A stretch of 63,206 nucleotides of DNA, counting the filler, from Reticulomyxa filosa (lineage: Eukaryota; Protista; Foraminifera): assembly GCA_000512085.1 (NCBI GenBank). It is 19 parts of 19 records of this genome, joined end to end, with 100 filler letters (N's around TTAATTAATTAA, not from the genome) between each part and the next. Parts side by side here need not be neighbours in the genome. Positions count along the whole stretch, not along the records: positions 9,791 to 13,053 come from ASPP01008196.1; 18 more parts are not named here. The stretch is one strand, 5' to 3'. This document shows, one piece after another, positions 9,691 through 13,053 of this stretch. The translations under genes and the position numbers were made by a program. A model generated the notes under the pieces. That model worked only from the letters and a program-made list of their open reading frames with translations, did not search any database and had not been told where the DNA came from. The stretch's first letter is position 1, and each line of letters begins with the position of its first letter.

Positions 9691-9792
9691 NNNNNNNNNN
9701 NNNNNNNNNNNNNNNNNNNNNNNNNNNNNNNNNNTTAATTAATTAANNNNNNNNNNNNNNNNNNNNNNNNNNNNNNNNNNNNNNNNNNNNGC

Positions 9793-10713
9793 GAACTGCT
9801 GGACCGGCTTCTGACGCACAACATCGCGGCGCTCATGGCGGACGATCGGATCGAGCTTGCCGAGGTGGTGCAGGACGGGGTCCGGGTGCGGGCCGGCGCG
9901 GGAGCGTCTTCGTTCCGCCGCCGGCAGAGCCTGCACAAGCACCTGAAGAAGGCGCGCCGGCTGGTCGAGTACCTGAAGCGGGAGATCGACGAGGACCCCG
10001 ACGCCAGCAACCGGCGCATCAAGGCGGCCCAGGAGCGGGCCGCGCGCGAGCGCGAGGAGCGCGTGGCGGCCGCGCTCGACAAGCTGGCCGAGATCGAGGC
10101 CGAGCGGGAGCGGCGCGGCAAGACCAACAAGAAGCAGGTGGCCGGGCAGAAGGAGCCTCGCGCCTCGACCACCGATCCTCAGGCGCGCGTCATGAAGATG
10201 GCGGATGGCGGCTTCCGGCCGGCCTACAACTGCCAGATCGGCACGGTGGCCGAAGGCCAGATCGTGGTCGACGTCGCCATCGACACCACGGGTTCGGACC
10301 GCGGCCTGCTGCGGCCCATGCTGGAGCGGCTGAAAGAGCGCTATCAACGGCAGCCCCGGCGCCATCTGGTCGATGGGGGCTTCCACAAGAACGAGGATAC
10401 GGAGGAGGCGTTCGAGCAGGGTGTGTTGATCTACGGACCGACCACCCGGAACAAGCACAAGAGCGACCCCTATGCGCCGCGGCCCAAGGACGGCCCCGGC
10501 GTTGCCGCCTGGCGCCGGCGCATGCGGAGCCCGCACGGCAAGGGCGTCTACAAACGACGGGCGATGGGCGAGTGCATCAACGCCCGCTTCCGGCAGTGGG
10601 GCCTGCGCCAGTTCACCGTGCGCGGCGTTCACAAGGTCAAAACCGTCCTGCTCTGGTTCGCCCTCGCCAACAACATCATCGCCGGCCATCGCCTCAGGAC
10701 AGCCAACGCATGA
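9793..10713 (+). CDS. IS1182-family DDE transposase, 5' truncated
   Basis: QDGVRVRA, STTDPQARVMKMADGGFRPAYNCQ, LVDGGF and YKRRAMGECINA...GLRQFTVRG..KV...LW.ALANN are typical IS1182 motifs; the frame is open to the contig edge. Confidence 0.85.
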   Translation, partial: ELLDRLLTHNIAALMADDRIELAEVVQDGVRVRAGAGASSFRRRQSLHKHLKKARRLVEYLKREIDEDPDASNRRIKAAQERAAREREERVAAALDKLAEIEAERERRGKTNKKQVAGQKEPRASTTDPQARVMKMADGGFRPAYNCQIGTVAEGQIVVDVAIDTTGSDRGLLRPMLERLKERYQRQPRRHLVDGGFHKNEDTEEAFEQGVLIYGPTTRNKHKSDPYAPRPKDGPGVAAWRRRMRSPHGKGVYKRRAMGECINARFRQWGLRQFTVRGVHKVKTVLLWFALANNIIAGHRLRTANA

Positions 10714-10803
10714 CCAGGCCGTTGCGGGACCTGCACGGCTATGGCCGCCAAACCCGCCCGTGGCGACAAGGCCCAGCGCACCATCCCGCGCGAACCCAAA
10801 CCC

Positions 10804-10834
10804 GAGAGCTTGCCGAATACGCTCACAAGCTCTC
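10804..10834. repeat. Perfect 9-bp inverted repeat GAGAGCTTG-N13-CAAGCTCTC at the presumed IS1182 right end, abutting the IS110 left end
   Basis: 10804-10812 is the exact reverse complement of 10826-10834. Confidence 0.7.
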
Positions 10835-10864
10835 AGATTCTATGTGGCGACGAGAGGTCGAGAG

Positions 10865-10900
10865 GTAGGTTTGGAGTTGCGAGAACCGAACCTACGGAGG
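10865..10900 (+). promoter_or_regulatory. 5' leader hairpin (GTAGGTTTGG/CCGAACCTAC) immediately followed by the Shine-Dalgarno GGAGG of the IS110 recombinase
   Basis: 10-bp stem 10865-10874/10886-10895 with one G:U pair; GGAGG at 10896-10900; ATG at 10905. Confidence 0.65.
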
Positions 10901-10904
10901 AGTT

Positions 10905-12077
10905 ATGACGTCTTCACATCCCATCGACACCCCCGCCGCCGGCGAGAAGGATGCCACGTTGTACGTGGCGTTTGAACTGAGCAAGTCGAAGTGGCTGATC
11001 GGTATGGTGGTGTCTGGCGAGAGCAAGATGAGCCGCCATCAGGTGGCTGGCGGCGATACGGCGGGGGTGTGGCAGCTGATCTCGAGGAAGCGCGCCCATG
11101 CGGAGAAGCAGGGCCGGCGGGTGCGTATGGTGAGCTGCTACGAGGCCGGCTATGACGGCTTCTGGTTCGACCGTTGGCTGGCCGAGCAGGGCGTCGCCAA
11201 TCGGGTGCTCGATCCGTCGAGCATCGAGATGCCGCGGCGCGCGCGACAGGCCAAGACGGACCGTCTGGACCTCGAGCGTCTGATGCGGGTGCTGATCCGC
11301 CACGAGGGTGGCGAGCCGAAGGTCTGCAGCGTGGTTCATCCGCCGACCCCCGAGCAGGAAGACGCCCGTCGAGTGTCGCGCGAGCGGGACCGGCTGATCG
11401 GCGAGCGCACCGCCCATGTCAACCGCATCAAGGGTCTGTTGCATGGCCAGGGGATCCGCGACGTGCATCCGCGCCGCAAAGGCTTCCTCGAGCAGCTTGC
11501 CCAACTTCGGACCGGCGACGGCCGCGCCGTGCCGGCCAACCTGGCGGCCGAGATCCAGCGCGAGCACGCCCGCCTGGTGCAGGTCGGCGAGCAGATTGCC
11601 GAAGTCGAGAGCCAGATGAAGGCGGAGCGTGCCGCCGCGGCGCCGGACAGTCGGGCCAGCCAGGTCAACCAGCTGATCGGCCTGAAGAGCGTCGGGCCGG
11701 TCGGCGGCGAGACGCTGGTCAACGAGGTATTCTGGCGCGACTTCCAGAACCGGCGCCAGGTCGGAGGCTATTTTGGCCTGGCCGGGACGCCGTTCGACAG
11801 CGGCCAGAGTTCGCGCGAGCAGGGCATCAGCAAGGCCGGCAACGCCCGTGCCCGGACCTTGGCCATCGAGCTTTCCTGGCTATGGCTGCGCTACCAGCCC
11901 GCCAGCACCTTGAGCCTGTGGTTCACGAGCCGCGTCGGCGATCAAAAAGGCCGTGTCAGACGCATCGCCATCGTCGCCCTGGCGCGCAAGCTGATGGTGG
12001 CGCTGTGGCGCTTCCTCACCCAAGGCCTGGTGCCCGAGGGCGCCAGGCTGCGAGCTGCCGCACCGGCCGGCCGCTGA
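10905..12077 (+). CDS. IS110-family transposase/recombinase (RuvC-like DEDD domain + Tnp20 domain), intact 390 aa
   Basis: YVAFELSKSKW, CYEAG and AKTDRLD (E24, E80, D119, D122); C-terminal YFGLAGTPFDSG (catalytic Ser), GISKAGN and AIVALARKL. Confidence 0.95.
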   Translation: MTSSHPIDTPAAGEKDATLYVAFELSKSKWLIGMVVSGESKMSRHQVAGGDTAGVWQLISRKRAHAEKQGRRVRMVSCYEAGYDGFWFDRWLAEQGVANRVLDPSSIEMPRRARQAKTDRLDLERLMRVLIRHEGGEPKVCSVVHPPTPEQEDARRVSRERDRLIGERTAHVNRIKGLLHGQGIRDVHPRRKGFLEQLAQLRTGDGRAVPANLAAEIQREHARLVQVGEQIAEVESQMKAERAAAAPDSRASQVNQLIGLKSVGPVGGETLVNEVFWRDFQNRRQVGGYFGLAGTPFDSGQSSREQGISKAGNARARTLAIELSWLWLRYQPASTLSLWFTSRVGDQKGRVRRIAIVALARKLMVALWRFLTQGLVPEGARLRAAAPAGR

Positions 12078-12099
12078 ACGGCGGCGGCCCGGTGTGTTG

Positions 12100-12260
12100 C
12101 GCAGGGAGCTGATGATGACCGTCCTCATCCATGGACCATGCGGTACCGCTGTCTCAGAAGGGTCTCATCGTTTCCTGGGCAAGACCTCGACCGTGCATGA
12201 GGGATTTGGGTGCGGGGCGCAGCGACGCCCGACCGGATATAAGGTGATGCCGTCGACACA
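12100..12260 (+). ncRNA. Predicted bridge RNA / seekRNA of the IS110 element (target-binding loop 12101-12177, donor-binding loop 12187-12256)
   Basis: Two stem/internal-loop/hairpin modules. Loop strands CCTCATCC and TCTCAG match the flanking target; ATATAAG and (with wobbles) GAGGGATTT match the element ends. Confidence 0.8.
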
Positions 12261-12414
12261 ACGTGCATTGGCCAGACGCCCAGAGTTCCAACGCAACGCG
12301 CCGAAGCCGCCTCTCCACGGACCCATTCCAGCGCCGCGCTCGCGCGCAGCACTCTCAAGCTTCCATTCCCGAGAGGGCCCGATGATTGAGGGACAAAAAT
12401 ATCCAAACCGACCC

Positions 12415-12438
12415 TTGACCGTTCAGCGCTCATATAAG
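12415..12438 (+). promoter_or_regulatory. Outward-facing -35 box (TTGACC) at the IS110 right end; forms TTGACC-N17-GATTCT across the circle junction
   Basis: TTGACC at 12415-12420; joining at the AG core places G+ATTCT (10837-10841) exactly 17 nt downstream. Confidence 0.65.
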
Positions 12439-12506
12439 GATGAGGTAGCGCGTGTCGACTTGAAGCGGAAAGACTTTAGGACAGCGCTTCGAAGCGAGGT
12501 AGCGGC

Positions 12507-13053
12507 CTATGCCCCCGACTTGCCGGTCGCGTCCTCGATGGCCTTGAGCAGGACCGGCCAGTATTCCTCGCCATGCCCCAATTCGACGGCGCGCTCCATC
12601 ACTTCGCGCGCCACGTCGGCGCCGAGCGCCGGGATCTTCGCCTGCTCCGCCATGTCGATGGCGTAGCTCAGGTCCTTCAGAGCATACTTCGTCGAGAACG
12701 CGCGCTCGGGGAACGCTCCCGTCAGCAGCGCCTTCATGCCGTGGTTGCGGAGCGCGAAGGAATCGGCCGAGCCTTTGGTCAGCGTCTCGAACAGCACCTT
12801 GCCATCGACTCCGTTCGCGCGGGCGATCGAAAGCCCTTCGGCCAGCGCCACCACGGTCTGGAACAGGATCATGTTGTTCAGGATCTTGACGGTCTGGCCT
12901 GCGCCGACGTCGCCGCAATGGGTGACCTCGCTCGCCATGTGGCGCAGGAGCGGCGCGATACGCTCGAAGGTCGGCGCGGTCGCGCCCACCATGATCGACA
13001 GCGTCCCGTCGATCGCGGCCTGTCGCGTGCGCGCGACCGGCGCGTCGGCGAAG
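12507..13053 (-). CDS. NAD(P)-dependent beta-hydroxyacid dehydrogenase (3-hydroxyisobutyrate dehydrogenase/tartronate semialdehyde reductase family), 5' truncated
   Basis: FADAPV...A..GTLSIMVG...HCGDVGAGQTVKILNN...AEGL...F...YALKDL. Confidence 0.9.

Follow-up and report, generated by a model that had tools for sequence, protein, structure and literature searches.

An IS1111-type element with a probable bridge RNA whose guides covary with target and donor DNA

The window, by which we mean the whole stretch of DNA analysed here (63,206 nucleotides, filler included, from the Reticulomyxa filosa assembly GCA_000512085.1), appears to hold a complete and probably active IS1111-type element of the IS110 family, with its own bridge RNA, inserted in a REP-like palindrome. 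From comparison with related elements we put the probability of this reading at roughly 0.9. The reading is built on the element's anatomy and site specificity, on covariation that links the guides to DNA and, within the RNA, the strands of stems to each other, and on the family and predicted fold of the protein. The bridge or seek RNA could be read from the raw sequence and confirmed by comparative analysis alone. Among its relatives, about 20 target guides have been reprogrammed naturally while the scaffold is conserved; this series includes single-base guide/target switches between near-identical RNAs and could guide the engineering of IS1111-type recombinases. The mechanism itself is not new: RNA-guided recombination by IS110/IS1111 elements has been established since 2024, and the protein family already goes under the name "RNA-guided transposase" at NCBI.

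In the proposed mechanism, the 3' non-coding end would encode a structured RNA of about 230 nt. An internal loop of this RNA, the target arm, would carry the target guides, and a second domain would form a multiloop that contains a 7-nt strand identical to the right end plus core and a short, uncertain strand opposite the left end. The RNA-protein complex would join the excised circular element and the target, with Ser-mediated strand exchange at the AG/CT core, as experiments have demonstrated for IS621, ISEc11, ISPa11 and ISKpn4. Transcription, binding of the RNA, the circular intermediate and catalysis are the steps that we infer from published work.

Limits of the element and its target site

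In the piece of the window in question (9791-13053), an ORF of 390 aa stands between two genes of which only the 3' parts are included, one for an IS1182-family transposase and one for a dehydrogenase (Table 1). The IS1182-family gene, truncated by the edge of the piece, scores below the cut-off of NF033551. The element is located in an intergenic repeat just beyond the stop codon of the dehydrogenase-like gene.

Table 1. Features of the element, its RNA and its neighbours, in window positions
Feature	Position	Strand	Basis or remark
IS1182-family transposase gene, 3' part	9835-10713		Truncated at piece edge
Left target flank TCTC + core AG	10831-10836	+	YCTCAG right before element in 9 near-identical copies
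Whole insertion sequence, 1602 bp	10837-12438	+	Limits of homology between copies from different contexts
Left non-coding end, 68 nt	10837-10904	+	Opens with conserved AT-N-C-Y-ATG
Left subterminal inverted repeat	10857-10876	+	Left end aligned with reverse complement of right end
Transposase/recombinase gene, 390 aa, intact	10905-12077	+	Pfam, NCBIfam, structure match
Putative structured bridge/seek RNA domain	12084-12310	+	Enclosed by basal helix P0 (12084-12101 / 12292-12310)
Target-binding arm	12102-12177	+	MFE fold; main stem 12110-12120 / 12161-12170
Right-target guide (loop-1 5' strand)	12123-12130	+	Pairs with top strand G + GATGAGG
Left-target guide (loop-1 3' strand)	12152-12157	+	Pairs with bottom strand TCTC + AG
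Donor-binding multiloop domain, closed by helix P2 (12175-12180 / 12278-12283)	12175-12283	+	RNAalifold, covariance model
Small hairpin Ha (12185-12188 / 12199-12202)	12185-12202	+	82% paired, 3/4 pairs compensatory, model-fitted alignment
Candidate right-donor guide GAUU	12203-12206	+	Opposite core G + first 3 nt of left end, top strand
Inner hairpin of donor domain, GGU/ACC + G+C-rich stem	12209-12234	+	93% paired, 3/6 pairs compensatory
Left-donor guide	12237-12243	+	Would pair with bottom strand of right end + AG at circle junction
Terminal hairpin ATGC..GCAT	12247-12268	+	RNAalifold; 91% paired, 4/6 pairs compensatory
Right subterminal inverted repeat	12401-12419	+	Includes conserved CTTGAC
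Right target flank GATGAGG	12439-12445	+	Identical in 9 independent insertions; flanks diverge farther out
3-hydroxyisobutyrate-dehydrogenase-like protein, C-terminal half (PF14833)	12507-12992	minus	Truncated at piece edge

A scan of one genome per species detected 80 related loci. In eight of them the protein shows about 98% identity; five of these eight close copies are found in a single complete Reyranella chromosome and are mutually 98-100% identical. Homology between the window and these copies extends from about 10832 to about 12446. Nine near-identical copies in different contexts occupy the same 13-nt site, YCTC-AG / GATGAGG, and in all nine the junctions read YCTCAG, the element start ATTCTATG, the element end CATATAAG and then GATGAGG. 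AG (CT on the other strand) is the common core and stands at both junctions, so that it is undecidable which copy belongs to the element; for the same reason we delimit the element as 10837-12438 and treat AG as shared. Uninterrupted sites, YCTCAGGATGAGG with a single AG, are present in the flanks of three loci (L001, L008 and L045). The nine insertions and the empty sites together give a site with a short core at both junctions and without a longer target duplication. The target CCTCATC-CT-GAGA of the preliminary description is this site read on the opposite strand, with its CT core corresponding to AG in the orientation of the transposase.

In most copies a REP-like palindromic repeat contains the target site; the left flank of the window copy is instead another insertion sequence. 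The IS1182-family transposase gene lies directly upstream of the element (9835-10836), and the same IS1182-like sequence adjoins the element at the Reyranella locus L007 (384-1432), with 95.9% identity over 9791-12446. Despite this common neighbour, the right flanks of the two copies diverge past GATGAGGTRG. Either the insertion site is located within the terminal repeat of the IS1182-like element, much as IS4321 and IS5075 are in Tn21 ends, or the two elements are co-mobile. At L001 (1286-1432 and 3035-3184), the element is located within a tandem array whose units, about 52 nt long, start with GATGAGG and end with CTCTSAG, and every unit boundary is thus a potential target site.

The motif that opens the left end is kept in all loci with sufficient flank. 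The right non-coding end, downstream of the transposase gene, measures 361 nt against 68 nt for the left. When the two ends were aligned directly, subterminal inverted repeats of about 19-20 bp came to light about 20 nt from each tip; they include one indel, owing to which a repeat finder had missed them. CTTGAC is conserved in the right ends of all loci. Judged by its long downstream non-coding region and its subterminal inverted repeats, which are defining traits of the IS1111 group in PMC11187229 and PMC11208160, and by a guide order reversed relative to IS621, the element would be of the IS1111 type.

Covariation of the guides with target and donor DNA

The 80 loci yielded 53 distinct 3' non-coding ends with about 20 target specificities. 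The ends of the homologous elements were located independently of the RNA. In ten multi-copy families they were taken as the points where the copies cease to be alike; in the remaining loci they were assigned by two family motifs, AG/AT-N-C-Y-ATG on the left and CTTGAC, a short spacer and CCCAT-A-Y-R-AG on the right. Within the 3' non-coding regions, the stems and the donor region are conserved and both strands of loop 1 are hypervariable.

Three strands in the RNA of the window copy match the DNA of its junctions. GGATGAGG at 12438-12445, taken as its reverse complement, gives CCTCATCC at 12123-12130, TCTCAG at 12152-12157 equals 10831-10836, and ATATAAG at 12237-12243 equals 12432-12438, the element's final 7 nt (5 nt plus core AG). 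All strings quoted in the preliminary description, including these three guide/DNA matches, were found again at the positions given there. In dinucleotide shuffles of the 3' non-coding region the chance of the three exact matches was 0.009, 0.054 and 0.00075, and the three occurred jointly in 0 of 20000 shuffles.

The same relations hold across the loci. In about 20 specificities (20 distinct right-flank 7-mers), the 5' strand of loop 1 is reverse-complementary to core G and the right flank together, with a mean contiguous Watson-Crick run of 7.26 for the own flank and 2.84 for non-cognate flanks. The 3' strand is identical to AG together with the 2-5 nt of left flank that precede it (13 distinct left-flank 6-mers), with mean runs of 5.07 and 3.07, respectively. 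For the donor 3' strand and the right end these values are 7.08 and 3.00, and each of six right-end 7-mer variants is mirrored exactly in its own RNA. None of 5000 permutations reached the observed score in any of the three comparisons. The permutations ignore phylogeny, which is a minor concern because there were many independent guide switches: guides changed many times within clades, and also between very close relatives. One minimal pair (L030 and L043) is identical at 143 of 154 positions outside the guide. Its guides differ in one base (..CATCC vs ..CACCC), and the right flanks, GATGACG and GGTGACG, differ at the matching base. Both loop-1 strands track the DNA of their own locus (0/5000 each), and this covariation, the test that the preliminary description had called for, strengthens its main claim, which holds: an IS110-family RNA-guided recombinase with its own target and donor guides.

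Some loci deviate from perfect complementarity. Six loci (L065, L068, L069, L071, L072 and L075) have the guide GCCACCC, one base short of the perfect complement GCCCACCC of their conserved right flank GGTGGGCA. With the same right flank, the guide of L025 is the full complement and that of L038, CCCACCC, matches over 7 bases. The GCCACCC clade suggests a tolerated bulge or a shorter effective guide. At L017 (2666-2829) the left-target guide CCCGG faces the flank CCTCAG with one mismatch and one wobble, the core position included, and the right-target guide matches its flank perfectly; this locus is an off-target insertion or a drifting copy.

Recognition of the left end is less clear. A 9-nt guide for it, GAGGGATTT, had been proposed, with the reservation that it fits the left end only with wobbles and one mismatch. 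This weak fit was seen again. Counting Watson-Crick pairs, the score is 1.92 for the own left end and 1.63 for non-cognate ones, and 383 of 5000 permutations reach the observed mean; when G-U pairs are allowed, the scores are 4.44 and 3.58, and 4 of 5000 permutations do so. Variation at position 3 of the left end is not followed consistently by the RNA. The first four bases of the proposed guide (12199-12202) are taken up by the small hairpin Ha, although the positions of Ha slide between clades, which makes the hairpin less certain. With these four bases in Ha and the covariation weak, the 9-nt guide was rejected in favour of one of at most 4-6 nt. A short guide, of which about 4 nt at most (12203-12206) would be free to pair, is a possibility; its spacing of 2 nt to the next helix is that of the right-target guide in loop 1. 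Recognition on this side may depend mostly on the protein and the subterminal repeats.

Structure of the RNA and of the recombinase

The target arm folds as it had been drawn in the preliminary description. It is more stable than shuffled sequences (z = -3.1). RNAalifold recovers its main stem, for which pairing over 48 homologues amounts to 95.6% and five of ten pairs show compensatory changes. The hairpin of loop 1 is kept in 49 of 50 homologues, and that of the second loop, likewise proposed, is also paired with covariation (Table 1).

The donor region is arranged differently from what had been proposed, which was an outer stem (TCGAC/GTCGA with GCAT/ATGC) around a simple internal loop. These strands are complementary in the window copy, but TCGAC/GTCGA is 42% paired across homologues and GCAT/ATGC is conserved and shows no compensatory change; ATGC covaries instead with a GCAT farther downstream (12265-12268). 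The proposed module on its own has no extra stability over shuffles (z = 0.2), and we rejected its outer stem. Applied to the donor region, RNAalifold unprompted pairs 12175-80 with 12278-83 (P2) and ATGC 12247-50 with GCAT 12265-68. With these two helices, the donor guides are placed in a multiloop under a long-range helix, in agreement with the remark in PMC11208160 on the multiloops of IS1111 bridge RNAs. The identity of ATATAAG with the right end stands (0/5000), and the simple internal loop around it does not.

Building a covariance model from homologous elements, which had been suggested along with folding, gave a model of the donor helices (R1) that matches 48 of the 48 loci searched, the window with 85.7 bits. 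In an alignment made with this model, 86.9% of cells are paired and 17 of 25 pairs show compensatory changes, whereas displacing the partners by 1-3 columns leaves 30-43% paired; P2 is 88% paired, with compensatory changes in five of seven pairs. An alignment fitted to a structure favours pairing, and the displaced controls and the unprompted RNAalifold result agree with it. It was adopted in place of a MAFFT alignment in which the clade of the window is one column out of register with the majority at P2 and the terminal hairpin, and which gave low pairing for both (66% and 54%).

The whole RNA is enclosed by the basal helix P0, whose duplex in the window copy has an energy of -33.7 kcal/mol. 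P0 comprises about 17 bp and begins 7 nt past the stop codon; other clades have different but mutually complementary sequences at this place. The mean duplex energy is -17.7 kcal/mol for cognate and -13.0 kcal/mol for non-cognate strands, with the cognate strand first in 8 of 22 lineages. For P2 this energy test has little power, as the helix is conserved. The structured RNA would thus extend over about 12084-12310; the preliminary description had found the right region and set its limits (12100-12260) too narrowly. A fold of the whole 361-nt right end gave z = -0.21, without signal in this G+C-rich sequence, and folds of sub-domains and comparative analysis were informative where this fold was not. 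Compensatory base-pair changes occur in four or five helices, and tolerance of G-U pairs is confined to the + strand, pointing to an RNA of + polarity. A scan of 9791-13053 against Rfam with E up to 1 gave no match.

The strand CCTGGGC (12172-12180) has two potential partners, CAGGGA upstream (12102-12107) and GCCCAG downstream (12278-12283). The upstream pairing closes the target arm and the downstream pairing closes the donor domain, and both have some covariation support. In most families the two partners have the motif CCCAG in common. An alternative fold at this strand is possible.

A metatranscriptome contig of 159 nt covers 12090-12248 without a difference, alongside contigs over the gene; such contigs, given without strand or ends, show only that the sequence occurs in an RNA library, and they could originate from DNA. 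A search for a sigma-70-like promoter within the linear element found none, which fits the published view of a promoter that is formed at the circle junction. CTTGAC of the right subterminal repeat resembles a -35 box and is located 13-18 nt from the tip. When the junction of right and left end is inspected by eye, CTTGAC would stand 16-18 nt before G+ATTCT (across loci, G+ATTCT or G+ATCCT), a poor -10 box. A promoter at the circle junction would be possible.

The 390-aa protein matches PF01548, the N-terminal DEDD (RuvC-like) domain, with 30.3 bits (cut-off 29), PF02371, the C-terminal Transposase_20 domain, with 38.4 bits (cut-off 21.3), and the NCBIfam equivalog NF033542 ("IS110 family RNA-guided transposase") with 184.7 bits (cut-off 140). 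Its identity to anything in the plasmid collection is at most 51%. A single-sequence search against solved structures gave no match, and a profile of 13 homologues was required for alignment to the solved bridge recombinases. An AlphaFold2 model made from these homologues has a pLDDT of 81. The best PDB matches of this model are ISCro4 (9T56) and IS621 (8WT6, 8WT9), with E values of 7e-11 to 5e-9, full-length alignments of about 370 columns and TM scores of 0.5-0.6; the predicted fold of the recombinase matches that of IS621 and ISCro4. E80, D119, D122, S299 and G300 are invariant in the 13 homologues, and with the family profile S299-G300 aligns with the Ser-Gly (SG) motif of ISCro4 and IS621. 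At the place expected for the first catalytic Asp, where strand 1 ends, the protein has E24 (10974-10976; FELSK vs GIDVSK of ISCro4) in an alignment that is not significant (1.1 bits), and E24 is invariant in the 13 homologues, which are 50-85% identical. The first catalytic acid appears to be Glu in place of Asp.

Alternative readings and known systems

One alternative modifies the main reading. It holds that this alphaproteobacterial clade has a variant architecture in which an RNA switch, lopsided donor recognition and Glu for the first Asp come together; as a joint claim we consider it unlikely. The RNA of about 230 nt would be a three-way junction in which CUGGG(C), the strand that follows the target arm, pairs either with the upstream CCCAG-like strand, so that the target arm alone is closed, or with the downstream GCCCAG. 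It would thereby alternate between a short form that serves the target alone and a full, bispecific one. The donor would be read in a strongly lopsided manner, over 7 nt of the right end but no more than about 4 nt of the left, and the protein and the subterminal repeats would see to the remainder.

It is improbable that the system is of the right kind and the window copy an inactive relic. The left flank speaks for this, being another insertion sequence and not the usual repeat. However, the reading frame has its full length, the RNA model scores 85.7 bits in the window and 86.3 bits in the Reyranella copies, and ends, guides and stems are identical or nearly identical to those of the five copies in the Reyranella chromosome, whose mutual identity of 98-100% also counts against decay.

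Still less probable is a short seekRNA in which only the target arm guides, the ends being recognised by the protein through the subterminal repeats and the identity at 12237-12243 having another cause. For ISEc11, a seekRNA of 70-100 nt is sufficient, and recognition of the left end was left open (Siddiquee et al. 2024, PMC11187229); moreover, the left-end guide is weak in the element family of the window, and subterminal inverted repeats are present. Against this, all six right-end 7-mers are mirrored exactly in their own RNAs (0/5000), and the strand at 12237-12243 stands in a conserved, covarying frame with the same helix spacing as the left-target guide, which is hard to explain without pairing.

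That the 3' end acts as DNA, as a protein-binding or recombination site with flank matches as by-products of site-specific insertion and no RNA at all, is hardly credible despite the missing Rfam match and the lack of an internal sigma-70-like promoter in the linear element, for four or five helices show compensatory changes with G-U tolerance on one strand, the guides change together with flanks whose matched junctions are about 300 nt away, and the RNA is essential in relatives by experiment (PMC11187229, PMC11208160).

The preferred reading, a complete IS1111-type element with a bispecific RNA, can be compared with four sets of known elements. In IS1111 elements the non-coding region is located downstream and the top-strand match lies 5' of the bottom-strand match (PMC11187229). 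ISEc11, ISPa11, ISKpn4 and ISPst6, which are described in the same paper, share with the window's element the DEDD-type transposase, the long downstream non-coding region, the subterminal inverted repeats, and the position of the top-strand-complementary segment (12123-12130 here) 5' of the bottom-strand one (12152-12157). As in these elements, the two matches overlap at the insertion point and relatives are naturally reprogrammed. ISPa11 also inserts into repeated palindromes, its target being REP. The transposase is longer here, 390 aa vs about 340 aa (typically 330-350 aa, PMC11187229), and the literature range for subterminal inverted repeats is 7-17 bp. A donor-matching strand is evident in the window's element, whereas it is undescribed in that paper. 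Bridge RNAs have been predicted in 93% of IS1111 elements, often with the donor nucleotides in a multiloop (PMC11208160).

IS621 (Durrant et al. 2024, PMC11208160; 8WT6-8WT9) likewise has a bispecific RNA with separate target and donor regions, and reads both strands of each DNA around a two-base core, CT (AG as read here). Its guides comprise nine and four bases around this core (PMC11208160). The target arms of the window's element, 7 nt and 2-5 nt, are likewise one long and the other short, and the proteins are alike in predicted fold at a sequence identity of about 15-17%. Unlike in IS621, the RNA is located 3' and not 5' of the gene, the guide order in the loop is reversed (a reversal also described for IS1111 elements, PMC11187229), the subterminal repeats are long, and the donor guides are placed in a multiloop under a long-range helix and not in a simple internal loop. 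Read in transposase orientation, the longer target arm is on the right here and on the left in IS621, whereas the long donor arm is on the same side in both; the geometry of IS621 is thus mirrored for the target and kept for the donor.

ISPpu9 and ISPpu10 of Pseudomonas putida (PMC12288879; bioRxiv 10.64898/2026.03.19.712850) are IS110-family elements that insert into repetitive extragenic palindromes, and ISPpu9 has a small RNA gene downstream of its transposase gene. They resemble the window's element by description, in another host lineage and with another target sequence. Finally, IS4321 and IS5075, as described where PMC11208160 cites Partridge and Hall 2003, belong to the IS1111 group, carry subterminal inverted repeats and take the terminal repeats of other mobile elements as targets. 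As far as that description goes, the position of the element directly after an IS1182-family transposase gene, in the window as at L007, is a parallel to them.
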